The position numbers and the translations under genes are program-made. A stretch of 63,819 nt of DNA, counting the filler, from Octopus bimaculoides (lineage: Eukaryota), in the NCBI RefSeq assembly GCF_001194135.2. It is 8 parts of 8 records of this genome, joined end to end, with 100 filler letters (N's around TTAATTAATTAA, not from the genome) between each part and the next. Parts side by side here need not be neighbours in the genome. Positions count along the whole stretch, not along the records: positions 21,876 to 46,605 come from NC_068981.1; 7 more parts are not named here. One strand, given 5' to 3'. Below are positions 22,330-45,498 of this stretch, one piece after another; position 1 is the first letter of the stretch, and every line of letters begins with the position of its first letter. The notes below the pieces were generated by a model. That model made no database searches and was not told the origin of the DNA. It saw only the letters and a list, made by a program, of their open reading frames with translations.

Positions 22330-23645
22330 TGCTGAAGGCTGGAATGTCTTCGATGATAGGTTTGGTGTATCAGTGTTGATTTGAGGCTAAATAACAACAA
22401 AATTATTACTGAAGCAGACCAACGACGGAGCTTTTATGTGATTGCATGACCTGCTAGAAAAAGTAGCCAAACTTTCCATATGTTCGCTCAATGGAATTTT
22501 GCGAGCATTACTGTTCTGGATTTGTTGTGTGTGGACTTGTGAGCGTTCCGATAATGCGTTCCCTGTCTCGCCAATAGACAGTTCCTCGCAATTAGGGCAT
22601 TTAATACAGTAGATCAAATTTCTGCTTTTGTAGTTCATATCTGCATTTGTGAAAATCTGTCCATTTTTAAAATTCTAATGGATTTACCAGTATGCGTGTA
22701 TTGACACGTTCCATATCTGTTATCATTACACTTAGATATTGTGAATGTTTCATTCCGTTTGTTCATGTTGAATTTTGACTTTGTTAATAATTTCTTTAGG
22801 TTATGGGATTGCCTTTTGTTTAAGATAAGTGTTTGATTCGTTATTATGTTGTTTTAAAATTTTTCACTTTGTTTCATGATTTGAAAATTTGTTTTGGTGA
22901 TGTTAAAAATGTTCTGGTGATGCGAATTGTGTTACTAGAAATGGTATTGTGTTCCGTTGTTGAGTTCGTCTCTCTCGTGTTGCCCTAAGTTGTTCTATAG
23001 ATATCTCTTTTGCTCGTTGTATGCTATTTTCTATAACTAGGAGAAGGTGTTTTTGCTTGAGCAGAAATCTCTTTAGGCGGAGAGCTGGCAGAAACGTTAG
23101 CACGCCGGGCAAAATGCTTAGCGGTATTTCGTCTGCCGTTACGTTCTGAGTTCAAATTCCGCCGAGGTCGACTTTGCCTTTCATCCTTTCGGGGTCGATA
23201 AATTAAGTACCAGTTACGCACTAGGGTCGATGTAATCGACTTGATTCCTTTATCTGTCCTTGTTTGTTCCCTCTGTGTTTGGCCCCCTGTGGGCAATAAA
23301 GAAATAATAAATCGCTTCAGCTCTATACGTTGTATGTTCCTGGTATTTGCATCATCTACTATAGTACAAATTTTCCTAGCAAGACAGAACGGGATGTTGC
23401 GTTTTCTGTGTGTTGGGTGGAATGATTTGAAATTTAGGTACTGGTGTGTATCTGCGCTTTTGTAATAAATATCAGTTGTGATTATGGTGCTGTTTTTAAT
23501 TACCATTATGTTAAGAAGTGGTAATTGTGTGTTGCTAATTTCCGTTGTGAATTTAAGGCCAGGGTGTAGTTTGTGGAAGAGGGTGTTGAATTCTTCCAGA
23601 TTTTTTAGGGATTTGGTCCAAATTAGGAACCAATGATCGAGGTAT
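22330..23645 (-). mobile_element. Penelope-like element remnant (Neptune-type): RT motif C, thumb, Zn-linker, GIY-YIG
   Basis: YLD(H)WFLIWTKS at ~23645; TDIYYKSADTHQYLNFKSFHPTH..RNIPFCLARKICTIV (ORF 23024-23506); linker KCNDNRYGTC; NLIYCIKCPNCEELSIGETGNALSER..H (ORF 22387-22638). Frameshifted and interrupted by a SINE. Confidence 0.88.
23077..23310 (+). mobile_element. tRNA-derived SINE (family C) inserted in the PLE RT thumb, with 12-bp TSD
   Basis: Head GGCGGAGAGCTGGCAGAAACGTTAG...GAGTTCAAATTCC, core GACTTTGCCTTTCATCCTTTCGGGGTCGATAAA. Flanks AAATCTCTTTAG (23065-76) and AAATCGCTTCAG (23309-20) match 10/12 and duplicate PLE codons L-K-R-F. Confidence 0.88.
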
Positions 23646-23890
23646 GGGGGACGTGATTTGCTCCAGTTTTTGCAAACTGAATATGGGATACTTGGGACAA
23701 AACCTGTATCAAAAAATTGGAGAAAACTACGGCATGACCTTTAGAAGACATATAGAGGGCGGATGGAAAAGATACCTCGATGATTGTTTCCTAATTTAGA
23801 CAAAATTCCTAGAAAATCTGGAAAAATTCAGCACACTTCTCAACAGTCTACACTCTAGTCTCAAATTCACAAGAAAAATGAGCAACATAA
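23644..23890 (+). pseudogene. Inverted PLE RT fragment (motif B to motif C)
   Basis: MGT*FAPVFAN / MGYLGQNLYQKIGENYG...GWKRYLDDCFLI*TKFLENLEKFSTLLNSLHSSLKFT; directly abuts the minus-strand copy. Confidence 0.85.
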
Positions 23891-32757: not shown

Positions 32758-33920
32758 TTAGGTTGTCAAGAAAGTTCTTGCGGAATTTTTAATTTTGGTT
32801 TTAAATGATGTATTTTCAAACTAATTTTCGTTAAACTACTTTGACTTTATATATTAGTTTAAAACCCGTTTTTCGCTCTATCTAATCGTGTTACTCTTTT
32901 TTTTTTTGAATAATTAGGCCATTTCTTTCTGGAACGTTGAATACAACATGGACGAAAAGCAAATTCGCACAATTTTCTTATTCCAGTTCAAGCTAGGCCG
33001 AAAAGCTGCTGAAACAGCTCGCGATATCAATGATGCGTTTGGCCCAGGAACCACTAATGGACGTACATCACAATGGTGGTTCAAGAAATTTCGTAGTGGT
33101 GACGAGAGTCTTGAAGATGATAAGCGTAGTGGTTGGTCATCGGATGTTGACAACGAACAACTAAGAGCCTTAGTCGAAGCCAATCCACGCACAACTGTTC
33201 GAGAGCTTGCTTCTGAATTAAACGTAACGTATACGACAATGTCCAACCACTTGAAAGAGATTGAGAAAACAAAAATACTTGAGAAATGGGTGCCGCACGA
33301 ATTGAACGAACCCCCCCCCCCCCAAAAAAAAAAACACCGTTTTGAAGTATTGTATTCCCTCTTTTACGCAACAAAAACGACCCGTTTCTCGACCGGATTG
33401 TAACTTGCGATGAAAAGTGGATTATTTACAACAACCAGTGACGTTCAGCTCAGTGGTTGGACACCGACGAAGCTCCACGGCACTTCCCGAAGCCAAAGTT
33501 GCACCAAGAGAAGGCCATGGTGACTGTTTAGTGGTCTGCGGCCGGTCTCATCCATCACAGCTTTTTTGATCCAGGCGAAACTATTACGGCGGAGAAGTAC
33601 TGTCAGCAAATGGACGAAATGCATAAGAAACTCCGACAACAACAGCCAGCATTGGTCAATAGAAAAGGACCAATTCTTCTCCACGACAAAGCTCGGTCGC
33701 ACGTCGCACAACTGACCCTGCAGAAGTTGAACGAATTGGGCTACGAAACTCTGCCTCATCCGCCATACTCACCAAACCTCTCACCAAACCTCTCACCTAC
33801 CGACTACCACTTTTTCAATCATCTCGACAACTTCTTGCGTGAGAAATGCTTCAAAAACCAAGACGATGCCAAACACACCTTCAACGATTTCATTGCCACC
33901 AGAACGCAGGATTTTTACGC
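32758..33920 (+). mobile_element. Mariner (DD34D) transposon, 3'-truncated
   Basis: TA then TIR-like TTAGGTTGTCAAGAAAGTTCTTGCGG at 32758; transposase follows at 32948. No matching 3' TIR found. Confidence 0.92.
32948..33920 (+). pseudogene. Mariner transposase pseudogene (Hsmar1/cecropia-like)
   Basis: MDEKQIRTIFLFQFKLGRKAAETARDINDAFG..., WVPHEL, TCDEKW, LLHDKARSH, PPYSPNLSPNLSPTDYHFF. Frameshift at the C12-A10 tract (~33311-33332), in-frame TGA/TAG, homology lost after RTQDFYA. Confidence 0.92.
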
Positions 33921-34869
33921 GTTCTGTTATAACTGTTATGAAAAGCTGCAGGATTTCGGAGTTTGTCAAGATTTCAGAACCTTCACAGTGTTTGCGGTAA
34001 AAGTTTTCTTTGAGCTTAATTTAAATTTTTCTTGAGAGAGTTTAAGCTAGGTCGTAACAAAGTGGCAAAACTTACAGATTTAATAGAGTTTCCATTGTTT
34101 GTAAAATTTGTTCGTATAAAATCCTGATCCATCTAACACGTAGCCTCACTCAAGGTTTTAACGCTACAGCGTTCATGAATGTCTTGTTGTTTTAGTATTA
34201 TGATAAAGTTCATATGATAACCCTTTTTCAACGGAGAATGCATCCGCCTAAAATGCTTGAATTTCTTATAGAATAAAACCCACCTCAGAACATAATAACA
34301 GCAATCGAAGATAACCACTTTACCCTTTCTTTTTGCCAAAGAGCACAAAGCTAGAACAAAGAGCACAATGCTAGAATGTACTGAAGTCACGACCTTACTT
34401 GGGATTAGAATCCCCAGCCTGAGTGATGCTTAAGTTACGGTAGTGACTTTGACAGTGTGGGAATAAAGGCGTTGTGAAAAATCTTCAAGAAATGAAATAG
34501 AGTTTCGTTTGTCCAGTAAAATTTCCGTAAACACGTAGAGAAGAAAGTCACATGAATCCTGCAAAACGTCAATAAGCAGAAATTAATGATTCGGTCACCC
34601 ACATTAGACCGAAACTGATCCAAACTTTCACAATGCCAACAACGACGCTTTTGAGATTCTGAAACAATCTATCAACGGAAAAAAGTAAATCATTATGAAA
34701 AATAAATAGCCCCATTTTGTTGGAATAACTAACTTACGTATGTATGTATGTATGTATGTATGTATGNNNNNNNNNNATGTATGTATGTATGTATGTATGT
34801 ATGTGTGTATGTATGTATGCATGTACATACGCATGCATGTACGTAAGTATGTATGTATGATTTTCTTTG

Positions 34870-38278: not shown

Positions 38279-38320
<42 letters not shown>

Positions 38321-38879
38321 TAAAGTATCAAATATTATTATCGAGTTAGAAAACAGAGAGATCTAATGGATACAAATTAATTTATTAATTAATTAACATA
38401 TTCACCTACAGTTGTTTCATTTCAGGAACAAAATTAAAATTACAAAACATATATAAATATATAATTTTGCATTTTAAATACCTTGTATGAAAGCTCATCA
38501 GGGTGTACAAAGGACAATAAGGATTACATTATGATACGATTGGAATACGCAGAATATATAACCATGTTTATTATGTGCGTATGTATGTGTGCGCGCGCGT
38601 GCGTTAAAATTATTACTTTTATTTTTTTATTCAATAATAATAATAATAATAATAAAAATGATAATAATAATATTTTGAAAGGATTGACGTAACTCTTCAC
38701 AAAGGTAAACAGTCAAGACGAAAAGCGCGATTCGATTGTAAGATATTTTATTAGTTGAACGATATATCGACAGTAAACCTGTCTTTGTCGAGTTCAAAAT
38801 AAGAAGTGATAAAAATTCAAAATTATAGAAATTTAAATTTAATGTATGAACGAGAGCAACTAGCGTCCACATGTTGATG

Positions 38880-41576
38880 AAATGACATCATCAGTCTTTA
38901 AGTTTCAATTTTATAACAAGCGAAAAGAAAAGAAGGCAGAAAAAAGACTGAAAAAAAGAAAAGGAAAAAGAAGACTATTTAATCAAACTGTTTTGTATAA
39001 ATTTGATGATATTTTCCCGTCAATTTATTCATTCCTCCAGGGCCTGATGTTAATAACCCGCAAACATATTTCCCCTCATGCATTTTGAGAAGTGAAAGTG
39101 AAGCAGATTCAGAATATTTTCTGAGAATATGCACTTTCAAGTCTTTTTCTAAATTGCAGCCGTTTGAAGCAACATGCTCAGAAAATTCTGTTGAACTACT
39201 GTTGTAGTGTCTGACGTCATATCTGTGCCCATTAAATCTTTTATATAATTGTTCTATTGTACAATCAACATAAATCGAGTTGAGTTTCGTGCATTCTGCC
39301 GCGTACACCGAATGGGAATCTTTATATGCCCTACTTTCTTTATAAATGTTAACATTTCTGTTATGATTCGTGATGGAATTCCCTTGATGCATGTTGTTGC
39401 ACAATGAACAGAGCTTACCTCTCTTGCAGCTGTTTTTCAAGGTACGGTGAGCAGGTACTTGAAGTTCTTTTTCTTGGAATCAGAAATAAAGGTCAATAAT
39501 TCTCTAATATTTTCATCCCGTCTAAAGTTTAACATAGGCGGCTGAGGAAATATTTGCTTGAAACGCGGATATTTTTTCGCCACATGCTAGCAACTTTCAT
39601 GCAACACTTTTGAAATGCCAACGAAATTTCGGGGCCAGTTAATCACTAAAGGAATTCTGTCATCTATCATATTGTGTTTGATAAAATTATGCGTTAAGGT
39701 TTGACTATCTTTGCTAATCTTAGCTATTTCATTTGTTATTTCCTTTTATCGTGATTCACTGTAACCGCGTATATGTAACATTTGTATATTTCCAGTAATT
39801 CCCTATGTCAATACAAAACTGTTTTATCTCCAAACATTGGGATTTCGGATTTGACCGAATAATTTGATTTGGATGATTGTAGCGGCGGTGGAAAGAAATG
39901 TGGGATGACGTGGGCTTGCAAAATAACTCTGTCACTAATCTACCTCCAGTAAACTTAACTTTTGTGTCCAAAAATTCAACGCTATTTTTTGCGAAAAATA
40001 GACGTAAATTTTATGTTGGACTTAAAGCCACAGTTTTTAGCATAACAGTCACAGAAATGCAAGAAGTCAATTAAACTATCCTGTGATCTTTCCCAGACAA
40101 AAACAAAATGTCATCAATGAACCGTAACCAAAGTATTATTGGTTCATGACCATGAACGGATTTGAATGTCTTCAGTAGCTGTGTCTCGGATTTCATCATG
40201 AAGACATTAGCGAAATTAACTGCCATGAGAGTACCCATGGCGTAACCCCTCGTCTGGAGGTAAACGCTTCGTCCAAATTTCATTGTGTTTCGATCGACAG
40301 GTAATTCTTCATATGAAGTTTTGTCATTTAAAAATTCTTCTCAAATCGAAATATATTCACTTCTGTCCTGTCCATTATTACGATAACGCCTCCCTTATCC
40401 GTTATTAGCTAGACGTCGGTGTGTGTAACGTTGGGAATTTGTGAGGTTATTCCAAGACTTCTTTCCAATTGTTTTAAGGCTTTCTCTAATGCCTGTCTGA
40501 CAAGATTCAAGAAATGCCACTAGTGCTTATGAACGTCCATCCCTAACTTTATCAGGATACCAATTAGGATGCCTTTCAATCCAATTATGCCAGATTCCAT
40601 CATCATTTTTATTTTCAGTAAGCATAGAGTTTTCTGACTCCTTTTTTCAAAAAAATATTCCTTCAGCTTGTGACGGCGGAAAACTGAAATAGCTGTTCAG
40701 CTACTTAATTCCTGTCGAATTTCTTAGTGCTAGGGAAGAAACTCAGTCCAAGATCCAAGACTGAGACATCGTCGGGCGAAAGTTTTAGTTTAGATAAATT
40801 TATGACCGACCTATTCTCTAGTGTGATGGATTTTCTCGGGCAAGTAGGTTTCAGTCTTATTCTCATTAGATTCCTGACTACATTTTAGGCTTTTGTCTAA
40901 ATCTTCACTTAAAACATGGAGCCAATTGGGTAATAAAATTTGTTCTGAATGTTCATGTGAGAAGTTATAATTTTTAGTCATCTTTCTTGTGGTAATTCAT
41001 TTCTTGGGTGGGTGATAGAAAGTGAGTAACTTCTGTGGTATTTGTAGACATTTGAAAAACCTTTATTTTCGGTAAAGGAACAAATTCATTCTTTTCGAGG
41101 CAAAATGTTAGATGTGCTCGCATTTTTGACTGATCAAATAAAAACTTTTCTAGCGCGTTTTCAATGTCCAGTTCAGATGCATAGGCCAGCGCAAAAAGGT
41201 CACAATCATAAGAGCCAACTTGGGATTTAGTTATATGAACTTGTTGAACTGTAGGAATGTTTGTTTGTGGTGAGTACAACATTGTTATTTGTGCTATTAG
41301 TTCCTGTGAAACTGGTAAGTTCAAACTGTCATAAATATAAATATCTCCGAAAAAATTGGTCGACAAAAGAAAATGATTGTTACTGGTGTGATGAATGAAC
41401 AGTGTGCAGTATGGACTGTATGTTAGAAATTCCGTGTGAGAAAAATTGGTCGATTGTATTGGAATTTCAGGAAAAGTTTTCGCTACGATTTTCAATCTGG
41501 CATCAATAAGTTTATTACATAACATATGTCCCGAAAGTAAAAATGACTTCTCATATTTCAAAGCAAATGTTCTCAT
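38880..41576 (-). mobile_element. Penelope-like element (Neptune-type) with upstream Ulp1-like protease domain
   Basis: VINLSKLKLSPDDVSVLDLGLSFFP (from 40806); TDKGGVIVIMD; QTRGYAMGTLMAVNFANVFM and WLRFIDDI (ORF 40071-40283); LDTKVKF..LVTELFCKPT (39756-39971); CKRGKLCSLC linker and VYAAECTK..IYVDCT..LYKRFNGH..TSGPGGMN GIY-YIG (38979-39440). Internal deletion at ~40285 removes RT motifs 1-A. Confidence 0.9.
40974..41576 (-). CDS. Ulp1/SENP (peptidase C48)-like cysteine protease domain, 5'-truncated, transposon-borne
   Basis: 200-aa open frame with LLSGHMLCNKLID, FIHHTSNNHFLL (His), IYIYDSLN (Asp), SQVGSYDCDLFALAYA (Gln, Cys), FDQSKMRAHL. The ATG coincides with the junction to another element, so the true start is probably lost. 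Confidence 0.8.
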   Translation of the reverse strand: MRTFALKYEKSFLLSGHMLCNKLIDARLKIVAKTFPEIPIQSTNFSHTEFLTYSPYCTLFIHHTSNNHFLLSTNFFGDIYIYDSLNLPVSQELIAQITMLYSPQTNIPTVQQVHITKSQVGSYDCDLFALAYASELDIENALEKFLFDQSKMRAHLTFCLEKNEFVPLPKIKVFQMSTNTTEVTHFLSPTQEMNYHKKDD

Positions 41577-42110
41577 TCAAAATTATTATTCCTTCATAAA
41601 CCCCAATATCTTAAATAGTGCCCTCATTTTTGCTAAGAACTATACTAAGATCAAAGAAATGAATGTAATCCTCACGGCCCAAAAATCAATCATTGAATTG
41701 TGGGCACGAAAGGACACACCAAATTTCTTTAATATAACAATGGGACCCCAGACTCAGCGGAAGTGACCGACCTTGTGGGAATATATCAGACAACATTAAT
41801 AAGGTAGGGGACTCTACAAGATCTGCTTAAAAAATGCCTGTACAAATTTTTCAAAAGATTCGGCCTTTCTATCACTACAGAGAATGAAAATTGTTCTATC
41901 AACTACCTAGAAGTTAACTGTGATTTAAATACAGGATTACATGAACCTTACATGAAACCTAACTCTAACATAAAATAAATAACCTATCAAAGTAATCATT
42001 CACAATCTATAAAAAAGGTTCTTATAAAAAGCATTAGTAATAAAATTTCTTCTCTTCTAATGAGGACTTATTAAAAAAAAAAATATAAATAGAATAAGAC
42101 ACTAAAAGAA
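41575..42110 (+). mobile_element. PLE RT remnant of the second type (Hydra-clade-like by inference)
   Basis: IQNYYSFINPNILNSALIFAKNYT..ILTAQKSI..WARKDTPNFFNITMG; DSAEVTDLVGIY; FKRFGLSITTEN..INYLEVNCDLNTGLHEPYMKPN..SNH. Confidence 0.78.
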
Positions 42111-42444
42111 GCAGGTAACGTAATTGAATCATATATATTTATACGCATCCACATAAATCATGCATGAACACCCTCGTATTTTTTGGATCCTTTTTATTTA
42201 CTGTTGTTAATCTTGATATCTTGTGTCACTTTTATCTCGCATTTTAGATGTATTAGAAAAATTAGACGATTTAGGCGGTCTGCCACTTTGAAGATTGACA
42301 TTTTTATTCTTATAATTATCAACCTCTCATCTGCATTGTGCACCACTATGTTTATCACGCATAACTTTTTACATGTAATCTTTATTTATATGAGATTTTA
42401 TATTAATCTTTATATATTGTTGTATGCTTTTATATCTCTCCTAT

Positions 42445-42832
42445 GTGGAGGCGCAATGGCCCAGTGGTTAGGGCAGCGGACTCGCGGTCGTAGGATCGCG
42501 GTTTCGATTCCCAGACCGGGCGTTGTGAGTGTTTATTCAGAGAAAACACTTAAAAAGTTCCACGAGGCTCCGGCAGGTGATGGTGGTGAACCTTGCTGTA
42601 CTCTTTCACCACAACTTTCTCTCACTCTTTCTTCCTGTTTCTGTTGTACATGTATTTCAAAGGGCGAGCCTTGTCACATTCTGTGTCCCGATGAATATCC
42701 CCAAGAACTACGTTAAGGGTACACGTGTCTGTGGAGTGCTCAGCCACTTGCACGTTAATTTCACGAGCAGTCTGTTCCGTTGATCGGATCAACTGGAACC
42801 CTCATCGTCATAACCGACGTAGTGCCAACAAT
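42445..42832 (+). mobile_element. Near full-length tRNA-derived SINE, family B
   Basis: A box TGGCCCAGTGGTT, B-box-like GTTTCGATTCC, body, and 3' module shared with 2405-2655, 47271-47399 and 53185-53425. CpGs retained. Confidence 0.92.
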
Positions 42833-43087
42833 AATCTCTCCTATATTTTTATGTATGTTTGGTTTTATTCTTTATACCCTTGGAGAATCTTTACGGCTAT
42901 ACATGCATGATTTATGTTGATGTGTATAAGTATATATGATTCAATTACATTGATTGAATATCTTCATTTATGCGTTCGGGAATTTTGTTGACTACTTAGG
43001 ATTTGCGTTTTCATTTTCATCTACTTTGTATTATTTCGCATTGGCTCTCTACGAGCACTATTTAAATAGTCCATACTTTCTACAACA

Positions 43088-43159
<72 letters not shown>

Positions 43160-43962
43160 GGGTCACTTGTTCATTAGTCAAACAGGCACACTCTGAGAAG
43201 AGATTTGAGGAATTATGTTTAGTGTAGTTGTTGGTTATGACTGCTGGGAAAGTTTCCATTGGTTTCACGTGTATTACTGTTCTTAACAATATCATTGATA
43301 CATCAGATTTGCTGGTTTGAAGCAGAGAACCATTTTAGTAACGGAACTAAAAATACACTGAGTCAGCCCGGATTGTGACAACAAACCTGAAACGATATTC
43401 TTCGAAGCAAAATCTCTTCCAGGTGCTACGGATTTATTCCCCTTTGACCACATCCACTTGTGTCTGAATTGGGTCAGTTCATATACGATTTTCGTTCAGT
43501 AGTCAGCAAGCAGAGAATTCCGTGCTCTCAACACAATTTTTTCCACGTGAGAGGACCGGTTAAAAACACTTTTTGAATTTTGGAACGCCATAGGTGAATA
43601 TTCACCAATTTTAAAGGTAAGATGCTTAATCGGTGCCCTTATGAGAAAAATTCGAGTTCAAGACATAGAATGCTCTGCACGCTGACTTGTGAACAGAAAT
43701 CGTACATAGACGGACACGTCTGGATACAACTAGAACTGGTCAATGGGAAATAACTCCACTTCACCAAGAATTTCGTTTAAGATTTGTTTTCACACTTCTA
43801 TCTCCATTAGTAAGGAGGTTGTGTGCCCCCGTCTGGTTTATTACGAATATCAGCAAAAGACGTGAGACCAATGATACATTTCTGACCAATCACAACCAAA
43901 GTTAACATTATATTTGTGCGTATGTGCGTGCGCGTGATTTTATATGTATACACACACACACA

Positions 43963-44029
<67 letters not shown>

Positions 44030-45155
44030 NNNNNNNNNNNNNNNNNNNNNNNNNNNNNNNNNNNNNNNNNNNNNNNNNNNNNNNNNNNNNNNNNNNNNNN
44101 NNNNNNNNNNNNNNNNNNNNNNNNNNNNNNNNNNNNNNNNNNNNNNNNNNNNNNNNNNNNNNNNNNNNNNNNNNNNNNNNNNNNNNNNNNNNNNNNNNNN
44201 NNNNNNNNNNNNNNNNNNNNNNNNNNNNNNNNNNNNNNNNNNNNNNNNNNNNNNNNNNNNNNNNNNNNNNNNNNNNNNNNNNNNNNNNNNNNNNNNNNNN
44301 NNNNNNNNNNNNNNNNNNNNNNNNNNNNNNNNNNNNNNNNNNNNNNNNNNNNNNNNNNNNNNNNNNNNNNNNNNNNNNNNNNNNNNNNNNNNNNNNNNNN
44401 NNNNNNNNNNNNNNNNNNNNNNNNNNNNNNNNNNNNNNNNNNNNNNNNNNNNNNNNNNNNNNNNNNNNNNNNNNNNNNNNNNNNNNNNNNNNNNNNNNNN
44501 NNNNNNNNNNNNNNNNNNNNNNNNNNNNNNNNNNNNNNNNNNNNNNNNNNNNNNNNNNNNNNNNNNNNNNNNNNNNNNNNNNNNNNNNNNNNNNNNNNNN
44601 NNNNNNNNNNNNNNNNNNNNNNNNNNNNNNNNNNNNNNNNNNNNNNNNNNNNNNNNNNNNNNNNNNNNNNNNNNNNNNNNNNNNNNNNNNNNNNNNNNNN
44701 NNNNNNNNNNNNNNNNNNNNNNNNNNNNNNNNNNNTATATATATATATATATATATATCGTTTCAGGGAAAAGAACCATGGTTCATGAATTCATCGATGA
44801 AAATCCACTGTCACACATAGAAAAATTAATAAGTAAAAGCACAATGAATAAGTATAATATAATAGAAAGTAAATATCATGAGATAATGATAATAAAATGA
44901 CTACAAGTGTTTCATTACCAATTTTCAAATAGAAATAATATTTAAATCGTATGGGTACATGTATGTATGTGATTGTGTGTGTTTTAGTCTGTATGTGTTA
45001 GTATGTATGTATATATATGTGTGTATGTATGTGTATGTATGTATTTATATATGTATATGTATATATGTGTGTATATGTGTATATGTGTGTGTGTGTGTTG
45101 TGTGTATATATATGTATATATATGTGCGTATATGTGTATATATATATGTATATAT

Positions 45156-45200
<45 letters not shown>

Positions 45201-45498
45201 TATATATATATGTATGTGTGTGTGTGTGTGTGTGGGCGTGTGTGAATGTGTGTTTGTTTATACTATTCCTTCTTTACTAAATGTAGTAGTGATAATTTAT
45301 ATTTATTAATTGTGTATCTATTGGTACGTTAATATTTTAGTGAGTTTAAGGATTTAATATTGTAATGACACTACGATATTTATAAGATTAATAATATAGA
45401 TATTTTAATTAATTAAATTAATAATAGTATTTTAGCTTATTTCATATATATTATTCAAGTTATGTTTCTTAGTCTTATTACCTAAAATTTATAATTAC

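Follow-up and report, generated by a model that had tools for sequence, protein, structure and literature searches.

Our analysis of a stretch of the Octopus bimaculoides genome set out from the question of whether a Penelope-like retroelement can carry, ahead of its reverse transcriptase, a cysteine protease of the Ulp1/SENP type. Penelope-like elements (PLEs) are the least understood class of eukaryotic retrotransposons and are normally described as having one open reading frame (ORF) that encodes a reverse transcriptase (RT) and a GIY-YIG endonuclease (EN). The window, that is, the whole stretch of 63,819 nucleotides (nt) along which all coordinates are counted, holds the element on its minus strand, where a preliminary description had named a protease-like ORF (41576-40974), a short frame overlapping it (40981-40811), an ORF with the PLE N-terminal motif (40866-40705), RT motifs B and C and a GIY-YIG domain, all of which are present there. 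We find that 41576-38319 on the minus strand is a dead copy of a PLE, truncated at its 5' end and internally deleted, and that in the lineage to which it belongs the order protease, RT, GIY-YIG is a property of single proteins; of this identity and architecture we are highly confident. The copy consists of the following parts (aa, amino acids; UTR, untranslated region; P0164 is a related protein, and L001 and L002 are contigs with related elements).

40974-41576, minus strand: C48/Ulp1-like cysteine protease domain, a 200-codon ORF without stop or frameshift, with homology over 41552-40998.
40997-41003, minus strand: lesion at the first junction, consisting of one inserted nt (G near 41003) and of TGG to TGA at 40999-40997, both relative to the frame of P0164.
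40811-40981, minus strand: linker from the protease to the PLE core, a 56-codon frame (MTKNY...HHTRE) with 67% identity to aa 266-326 of P0164.
40852-40855, minus strand: lesion at the second junction, where 1 nt is deleted behind the codon ACT (40855-40853).
40705-40866, minus strand: PLE N-terminal conserved motif VINLSKLKLSPDDVSVLDLGLSFFPS, a 53-aa ORF with 81% identity to P0164.
40293-40704, minus strand: PLE N-terminal region up to the DKGG motif, with FRRHKLKEYFF, WYPDKVR, NNLTNSQR and DKGGVIVIMD.
40286-40296, minus strand: deletion junction, at which about 150-160 aa of the family ORF are absent.
39789-40289, minus strand: RT motifs B (YLQTRGYAMG) and C (RFIDDILF) and the downstream palm, with two frameshifts and an ORF at 40283-40071.
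39494-39787, minus strand: RT thumb and helix-turn-helix (RIPLVINW..., IFPQPPMLNFRR), with two in-frame stops and a frameshift at each end.
38979-39470, minus strand: CX5CxxC zinc-finger-like linker (CKRGKLCSLC) and GIY-YIG endonuclease.
38319-38978, minus strand: probable 3' UTR of about 660 nt, reaching up to (TA)n, by analogy with L001 and L002.
38280-38318, no strand: (TA)19.5 microsatellite, probably the target into which the element inserted, adjoining its 3' end.

Three-frame translation revealed that the PLE coding region is spread over all three frames, within a surrounding piece that is AT-rich (about 35% G+C), contains many microsatellites and other transposon relics and is thus eukaryotic DNA rich in repeats. 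The protease ORF has kept H68, D83, Q119 and C125 (in NNHF, YDSL and SQVGSYDCD), the catalytic His, Asp, Gln and Cys that had been claimed for it, and these fall in invariant or near-invariant columns of an alignment with 37 homologues. A remnant of a conserved (S/T)N(R/K)FxxL motif, reading PNWLHVL, is left in the linker, and the deletion near 40853 moves the linker frame into that of the PLE N-terminal motif, whose ORF (VINLSKLKLSPDDVSVLDLGLSFFPS) is closed by an in-frame stop at 40707-40705. Four frameshifts and one stop interrupt the region 40293-40704, and the deletion that follows has removed RT motifs 1 (FYGLPKxHK), 2 (PLRPIxS) and A (DVxSLYxNI). The last 153 codons form a lesion-free ORF at 39440-38979 (SVYAAEC...YVDC...RFNGHRYD) that ends in the stop codon 38981-38979. 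The N-terminal, DKGG and RT B and C motifs align colinearly with full-length relatives, and the GIY-YIG domain, in which CCHH-type cysteines stand between GIY and YIG, can be aligned to the nucleases of relatives for which Pfam PF01541 is passed or nearly passed.

The nature of the 200-aa ORF became apparent from its family. A word-indexed homologue search with the window ORF returned only the ORF itself, and the sole match of a phmmer search against the PDB, WDR12, was discarded as spurious. Against 1.84 billion representatives, phmmer gave 1196 matches at E<=1e-3 and 148 at E<=1e-10, of which the best other than itself had E=1e-35 to 1e-24, placing the ORF far beyond chance; in these the domain sits at about aa 225-420 of proteins of 1100-1460 aa, and in the top relatives the protease region is followed by RVT_1 and GIY-YIG. 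The window ORF and 37 homologous segments were brought together in an alignment of 38 members (A1), in which D83, Q119, D124, C125, R153 and H155 are invariant and H68, S84 and G126 nearly so. Searched against the PDB, the A1 profile retrieved a list headed by C48 enzymes only, with SENP1 (2e-6), an Ulp1-like protease (1e-5), SENP5, SENP2, yeast Ulp1 (5e-4) and SENP8, in alignments that cover the catalytic domain. Pfam Peptidase_C48 (PF02902) is matched by 28 of the 38 A1 members (best 5.7e-8), and a two-domain relative, P0061, scores 49 bits and so passes the gathering cut-off of 20.7. An AlphaFold2 model of the window ORF (predicted local distance difference test, pLDDT, 88.7; predicted template modelling score, pTM, 0.85) was compared with known structures by Foldseek, and the top 11 matches were all SENP5, SENP1, Ulp1 or SENP2 (E 5e-5 to 5e-4, template modelling (TM) scores 0.53-0.63); later matches were to other clan-CE enzymes, namely the bacterial deubiquitinase effectors SseL, OtDUB and ChlaDUB, XopD, and the pS273R polyprotein protease of African swine fever virus (ASFV). 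Profile, relatives' Pfam matches and modelled fold thus support the proposed membership of the domain with SENP/Ulp1 (C48, clan CE), as evidence at the level of the family and not of the window ORF alone.

Across 50 PLE-linked protease domains, no copy that has the respective column departs from the catalytic His, Asp, Gln or Cys or from the Gly that follows the Cys, an argument that the enzyme is active and under selection in elements that are still live. The same four catalytic residues are nearly invariant in 159 other homologous domains, and of the 50 PLE-linked copies, all 37 that have the column next to the catalytic His show an aromatic residue (F, W or Y) there. In distant members of the protease family (P0106, P0109, P0144, P0094, P0123, P0165) the domain is joined to PHD fingers, SWIM zinc fingers or an exonuclease of the YqaJ type; three gene models join the family to polycystin channels and are probably chimeric predictions that took in a transposon fragment.

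The evidence that protease and PLE core form one unit comes from proteins that contain both. When P0003 is aligned with the minus strand of the window, its aa 236-419 fall on 41552-40998, 492-543 on 40836-40681, 565-635 on 40613-40401, 837-999 on 40289-39795, 1007-1100 on 39787-39494 and 1127-1260 on 39392-38982, so that the nearest relatives of the window protease and those of its RT-EN part are the same proteins. The junctions themselves are covered by P0164, a 370-aa fragment from the profile search, whose identity to the window is 74% over the protease, 67% over the linker and 81% over the PLE N-terminal motif, and which passes from the first through the second into the third in one uninterrupted frame; the frameshifts of the window at both junctions are therefore single-base indels. 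The preliminary description had supposed that two single frameshifts separate the window from one Ulp1-RT-GIY-YIG polyprotein. The two indels are real, each of 1 nt, but their repair alone gives no polyprotein, because about eight further frameshifts, at least four stops and the deletion of about 150-160 aa lie downstream.

The architecture that it had proposed is nonetheless borne out in the relatives, at least 24 of which are full-length ORFs with the protease domain, then the PLE RT, then a C-terminal GIY-YIG, all in one frame, while about 16 further ORFs are N-truncated inside the protease domain. These ORFs come from independent assemblies (ENA metagenomes including Tara Oceans, Logan and JGI). 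The full-length ones match RVT_1, and precomputed Pfam data add DUF8422 and HTH_animal, with no C48 annotation on the ORFs of 1200-1460 aa. DUF8422 (PF28514) was considered as an existing entry for the protease and rejected, since it also marks PLE proteins of 740-870 aa that have no N-terminal extension; it marks the PLE core. That the protease ORF and the PLE are unrelated neighbours, or the long relatives chimeras of assembly or gene modelling, might be suggested by the distant protease relatives with PHD, SWIM, YqaJ or polycystin domains and by the window frameshifts, which sit exactly at the junctions. However, P0164 spans both junctions at 67-81% identity to the window, the ORFs from ENA, Logan and JGI, at least 24 of them full-length and about 16 partial, keep the same order at similar spacing, and protease and RT of the window share their nearest relatives, so that we regard a chance association as refuted and scarcely conceivable. 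The protease is found in other copies as well, its nearest relatives sit in PLEs instead of with DDE transposases, and no element boundary lies between 40974 and 40806.

Judged from their sequences, intact members of this lineage have a single ORF of 1200-1460 aa whose six parts stand in a fixed order.

Part 1: short leader that closes with a 2A-like (V/I)ExNPGP motif.
Part 2: all-helical module of about 150 aa.
Part 3: C48/Ulp1-SENP-like cysteine protease of about 180 aa.
Part 4: disordered linker of 55-280 aa.
Part 5: usual PLE N-terminal motifs, RT and thumb.
Part 6: C-terminal GIY-YIG nuclease of the CCHH type.

The leader has the consensus M(D/V/I)D(L/I)xxYRxRIGxF, followed by a basic stretch and a hydrophobic helix (for example, P0003 aa 1-65; L001 502-4284). 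In 17 of the 24 full-length relatives the motif (S/G/A)(V/I)ExNPGP was found at aa 17-153, usually after DP and with a helix predicted directly upstream of it; a few relatives have HPGP variants. Three long helices make up the helical module (about 150 aa; AlphaFold2 pLDDT 81), which had no match in the PDB better than E=1.6 and appears to be a generic long-helix module. After the protease come two conserved short motifs, KWxxPxK and (S/T)N(R/K)FxPL. On the contigs L001-L004, from ENA metagenome assemblies including Tara Oceans, direct repeats of 58-300 nt join the contig start to the 3' end of the element, the pattern expected of a tandem or pseudo-LTR (long terminal repeat) arrangement with units of 4.4-4.85 kb, and in L001 and L002 a 3' UTR of about 600 nt is followed by terminal (TA)n.

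The decay of the window copy was mapped by a frameshift-aware alignment against P0018, read together with the DNA of the junctions. Ten frameshifts were located (near 41003, 40853, 40681, 40643, 40399, 40340, 40098, 39983, 39775 and 39440), together with at least four in-frame stops (40707-40705, 40529-40527, 39748-39746 and 39589-39587), the additional nonsense change TGG to TGA at 40999-40997 on the ancestral path at the first junction, and the deletion of about 150-160 aa with RT motifs 1, 2 and A, whose junction is near 40293-40289. The window copy is unable to make an RT; it is an old relic with nothing functional, and in itself is of no functional importance. All of the approximately 15 disabling lesions and the internal deletion lie within 41003-39440, a post hoc observation: the protease segment (549 nt) has none against about five expected at the density of the middle of the element, and the nuclease segment (459 nt) has none against about four.

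The absence of lesions from the protease homology, and the existence of the ORF as a predicted protein (P0001), are what one might see if the host had kept or exapted the 200-codon protease ORF after the rest had decayed. We hold this to be very improbable, because the Gly of DCG, invariant in the PLE-linked relatives, is Asp in the window, the ORF is cut at its N-terminal edge, and the equally lesion-free nuclease ORF means that the pattern, noticed post hoc in any case, is not specific to the protease. For annotation, decayed copies such as this one are a source of stand-alone "protease" gene models, of which P0001 is an example.

At its 5' side the copy ends with the loss of homology. Upstream of 41576, neither tblastn with 12 segments nor a profile hidden Markov model on six-frame translations nor a scan for NPG/PGP motifs detected anything of the family's N-terminal part, which is 85 to about 235 aa long, varying by relative, so the copy is 5'-truncated, and the 2A-like region is absent from it as a result. 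The 3' end is probably near 38319, by analogy, given that (TA)19.5 stands 660 nt past the stop codon and that the 3' UTRs of about 600 nt in L001 and L002 end in (TA)n. A second tract, (TA)33 (43092-43157), lies on the other side of the relic, 4.8 kb from (TA)19.5 (38280-38318), a spacing close to the 4.4-4.85-kb units of the relatives; 41577-43091 has no homology to the 5' part of the family, and thus only the 3' tract can be tied to the element. The putative 3' UTR also contains an octamer resembling a hammerhead core, CTGATGAG, at 38501-38494 on the minus strand, without helix II, GAAA context or Rfam match, which is probably due to chance.

The distribution of the fusion indicates its age. 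With the RT-EN part of P0003 as query, 1058 proteins were found at E<=1e-20, and where the N-terminus is complete and RT-EN identity is about 35% or higher, nearly every relative has the protease (24 full, about 16 cut inside it). The exceptions, P0202 and P0209, have an N-terminal extension without the protease, and their gene calls may start inside the linker. A clade without protease, at 33-35% RT-EN identity and with an extension of 115-260 aa, includes an amphioxus protein. In a neighbour-joining tree, which is rough, midpoint-rooted and without support values, the protease appears on several deep branches, so the fusion is old: it was made neither at the window locus nor recently, and is a long-standing feature of a large and diverse PLE group. 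Named relatives are few, a protein of the hydrozoan Clytia hemisphaerica being among the RT relatives, and scanning metagenomes with P0164 turned up no near relative.

The CX2-5CxxC linker has been kept by the window copy, by the basal protease-bearing P0085, P0233, P0246, P0258 and P0260 and by the protease-less sister clade, and has been lost in the largest protease-bearing subgroup (P0003, P0007, P0015, P0018, P0027 and others). Contigs of the latter still end in (TA)n in two of the four cases examined. Together with the CCHH-type cysteines, the linker points, by motifs alone, to a Neptune-like canonical PLE.

What the protease does for the element can be proposed with less assurance, and our best explanation as a whole, joining the dead copy, the architecture of the intact lineage and a mechanism, is one that we favour with moderate confidence. 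Transcription of the element would proceed from a tandem or pseudo-LTR arrangement, and translation would yield one polyprotein, from which the 2A-like motif would free the hydrophobic leader as it is made. The protease would be active and would strip SUMO, or a related ubiquitin-like (UBL) modifier, from proteins of the host or of the element, and removal of the modifier may lift a repression of the element that depends on it or help the element's ribonucleoprotein. The GIY-YIG nuclease would nick AT-rich or (TA)n DNA, and the RT would copy the RNA by target-primed reverse transcription. Nicking by GIY-YIG and target-primed reverse transcription are established for PLEs (PMC11167929, PMC8557442). 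Deconjugation of SUMO or another UBL in trans is offered as a tentative suggestion, somewhat short of probable; it is our best guess because the best matches are to SENP/Ulp1 and because Gly-Gly sites are essentially absent from the linkers.

The protease might instead process the polyprotein of its own element, for example cutting the helical module and itself off RT-EN within the disordered linker. CE-clan proteases of adenoviruses, ASFV and poxviruses process viral polyproteins, and those that do so cut after motifs of the Gly-Gly or Ala-Gly type. Consistent with such a function, ASFV pS273R is among the Foldseek matches, a long low-complexity linker always follows the protease, KWxxPxK and (S/T)N(R/K)FxPL could be sites of docking or cleavage, and the ORF already has another device for separating its products, the 2A-like motif. 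However, Gly-Gly is absent from the low-complexity linker between protease and RT in 18 of the 19 full-length relatives in which the linker can be delimited (the scan was for Gly-Gly only, with Ala-Gly outside it), and the best matches in sequence and fold are cellular SENP/Ulp1 isopeptidases, not viral processing proteases. Moreover, a canonical PLE protein, which has no protease, functions in vitro with its RT-EN polyprotein uncleaved (PMC11167929). Self-processing is in our view unlikely.

A further possibility is that the domain is a deubiquitinase, or another UBL hydrolase, whose role is tied to the 2A-like motif and which counters ubiquitin-dependent ribosome quality control or degradation set off by 2A-induced stalling, or shields the proteins of the element from the proteasome. 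Motif and protease occur together in 17 of the 24 full-length relatives, the deubiquitinases or related CE-clan enzymes SseL, OtDUB, ChlaDUB and XopD are among the fold matches, the Trp clamp typical of SENPs is incomplete, and a 2026 preprint that raises this link reports Josephin and OTU deubiquitinase domains in 2A-bearing ORF2 proteins of long interspersed nuclear elements (LINEs) (PMC13405545). The top matches in sequence and fold are nevertheless SUMO proteases, the other seven of the 24 relatives have the protease without a recognisable NPGP, and the connection between 2A motifs and deubiquitinases is itself only a hypothesis. We therefore rate this alternative as decidedly unlikely, and retain isopeptidase action in trans as the preferred reading of the protease.

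Several observations weigh against the preferred explanation as a whole. Activity and substrate of the protease are inferred from sequence and a structural model. Clan CE also holds deubiquitinases, deNEDDylases and viral polyprotein proteases, and at the column of the Trp in SENP1 'NWLNDEII', 28 of 31 PLE-linked copies have a different residue (E, Q, D or another), the window copy having M. In SENPs this Trp is one half of the clamp on the Gly-Gly tail of SUMO, and its replacement in most PLE-linked domains makes specificity for SUMO uncertain. In the window ORF (41576-40974) itself, Asp replaces the invariant Gly after the catalytic Cys (DCD against DCG), and a Pfam search with the window ORFs alone gave no match for the protease, Peptidase_C48 included, for the nuclease or for the N-terminal motif ORF. 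The 2A-like motif has no canonical Asp, being (S/G/A)(V/I)ExNPGP and not D(V/I)ExNPGP. No target-site duplication or pseudo-LTR was found around the window copy, the 5' boundary of which is consequently set by homology loss alone. Hammerhead ribozymes gave no Rfam match at E<=1 in the window piece or in L001-L004, and a scan for the core motif CUGANGA...GAAA was also negative, although minimal dimeric PLE hammerheads can escape such searches. Finally, most relatives come from marine metagenome contigs. In its widest form our proposal is that a large and old PLE group of marine animals, with at least some hosts among cnidarian-like plankton, combines an active Ulp1/SENP-type hydrolase with a 2A-like recoding signal and acts in trans on SUMO or UBL of the host, thereby escaping modifier-dependent silencing; in this full extent we think it rather unlikely to hold. 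Were it true, a retrotransposon would encode a counter-defence enzyme, and the connection of SUMO with transposon repression could be put to the test outside model organisms.

The piece of the window around the relic contains other repeats. About 540 nt upstream of the relic, 42117-42951 looks like a non-autonomous DNA transposon of the miniature inverted-repeat transposable element (MITE) type, with 57-nt inverted repeats (42117-42173 and 42895-42951; 88% complementary) around 721 nt. Two ORFs at 32948-34035 on the plus strand belong to a mariner/Mos1-like transposase relic with a local G+C of 0.42-0.45; the first matches Pfam HTH_48 (1.4e-15), and the second contains PPYSPNLSPTDYHFF, a motif that typifies mariner catalytic domains. 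Another PLE-type RT, with 25-33% identity to that of the relatives, has left two fragments, at 23285-23725 (minus strand) and 23641-23883 (plus strand). They are oppositely oriented and meet near 23641-23644, forming the sort of inverted partial duplication that has been described for PLE insertions. Rfam matches of the mir-297/mir-466 type (34785-34857, 43913-43987 and 45009-45213) were rejected as (TG/TA)n-type microsatellites with scores far below gathering. An assembly gap (N run) occupies about 44030-44745, between (AC)n and (TA)n repeats, and ORFs across it are meaningless.

A full-text search of the literature gave no report of an Ulp1, C48 or SUMO protease in PLEs and no entry for the architecture (Repbase and Dfam, which may hold such a consensus, were outside this search), and likewise no report of a 2A-like motif in a PLE. 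A survey of 2021, the most complete on PLE architectures, lists no Ulp1/C48 domain (PMC8557442). Canonical PLEs with a C-terminal endonuclease comprise the Neptune, Nematis and Penelope/Poseidon clades (Arkhipova 2006; Craig et al. 2021, PMC8557442), of which Neptune and Nematis have the CX2-5CxxC zinc-finger-like linker upstream of GIY-YIG and Penelope/Poseidon do not. The family described here resembles them in this linker (in the window copy and the basal relatives) and, in the relatives, in an apparent tandem or pseudo-LTR arrangement and the (TA)n-associated ends. It differs in the extra 400-600 aa that stand N-terminal to the core (2A-like leader, helical module, C48-type protease and long linker), in the loss of CX2-5CxxC from its largest subgroup, and in that a hammerhead was not detected.

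The leader compares with the 2A/StopGo leaders of ORFs in non-LTR retrotransposons with an apurinic/apyrimidinic endonuclease (APE), in which a hydrophobic helix also precedes (V/I)ExNPGP (Odon et al. 2013, in PMC12338488; Heras et al. 2006). Unlike in these, the putative 2A sequence is found in a PLE and has S, G or A for the canonical Asp of D(V/I)ExNPGP. With cellular SENP/Ulp1 (MEROPS C48), the protease shares the fold, the order His-Asp-Gln-Cys, DCG and the aromatic residue after the catalytic His, whereas identity in structural alignments is 12-16%, the Trp of 'WLND' is replaced in most PLE-linked copies, and N-terminal targeting regions are missing.

Among mobile elements, an Ulp1-like protease is N-terminal in the RT ORFs of two kinds of nematode non-LTR retrotransposon, NeSL and Utopia-1_TSP (Kojima & Jurka 2015, PMC4640811), which, compared by description and not by sequence, have a LINE-type RT, a restriction-like endonuclease and zinc fingers and no reported 2A-like leader, in contrast to the telomerase-like PLE RT and the GIY-YIG of the present family. 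Dualen/RandI (Josephin, OTU) and the PLE Chlamys-1_cBra, with its C-terminal Josephin-like motif, likewise place a cysteine protease of the ubiquitin/UBL-hydrolase type inside a retroelement polyprotein (PMC8557442; PMC13405545), and Dualen-like LINEs also combine the protease with 2A-like peptides; their domains have the Josephin or OTU fold and not that of clan CE/C48, and Chlamys-1_cBra differs further in position, as a C-terminal extension, and in host, a charophyte alga. DNA transposons with Ulp1/C48 (Ginger, CryptonF/S and MULE-type; PMC2836005, PMC3212892) share the C48-type accessory domain, and distant members of the window's protease family carry the PHD, SWIM and YqaJ domains typical of them; these transposons are cut-and-paste or tyrosine-recombinase elements without RT, often with the protease in a separate ORF. 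A widespread PLE lineage with an Ulp1/SENP-type protease, its catalytic residues invariant, and, usually, a 2A-like motif shows that PLEs too have gained accessory enzymes, as have NeSL/Utopia and Dualen LINEs. Set beside LINEs and DNA transposons, protease-bearing PLEs suggest that the same kind of domain has been recruited independently by all three, and this repetition points to a recurring benefit, be it tampering with SUMO/ubiquitin-type modification or self-processing.

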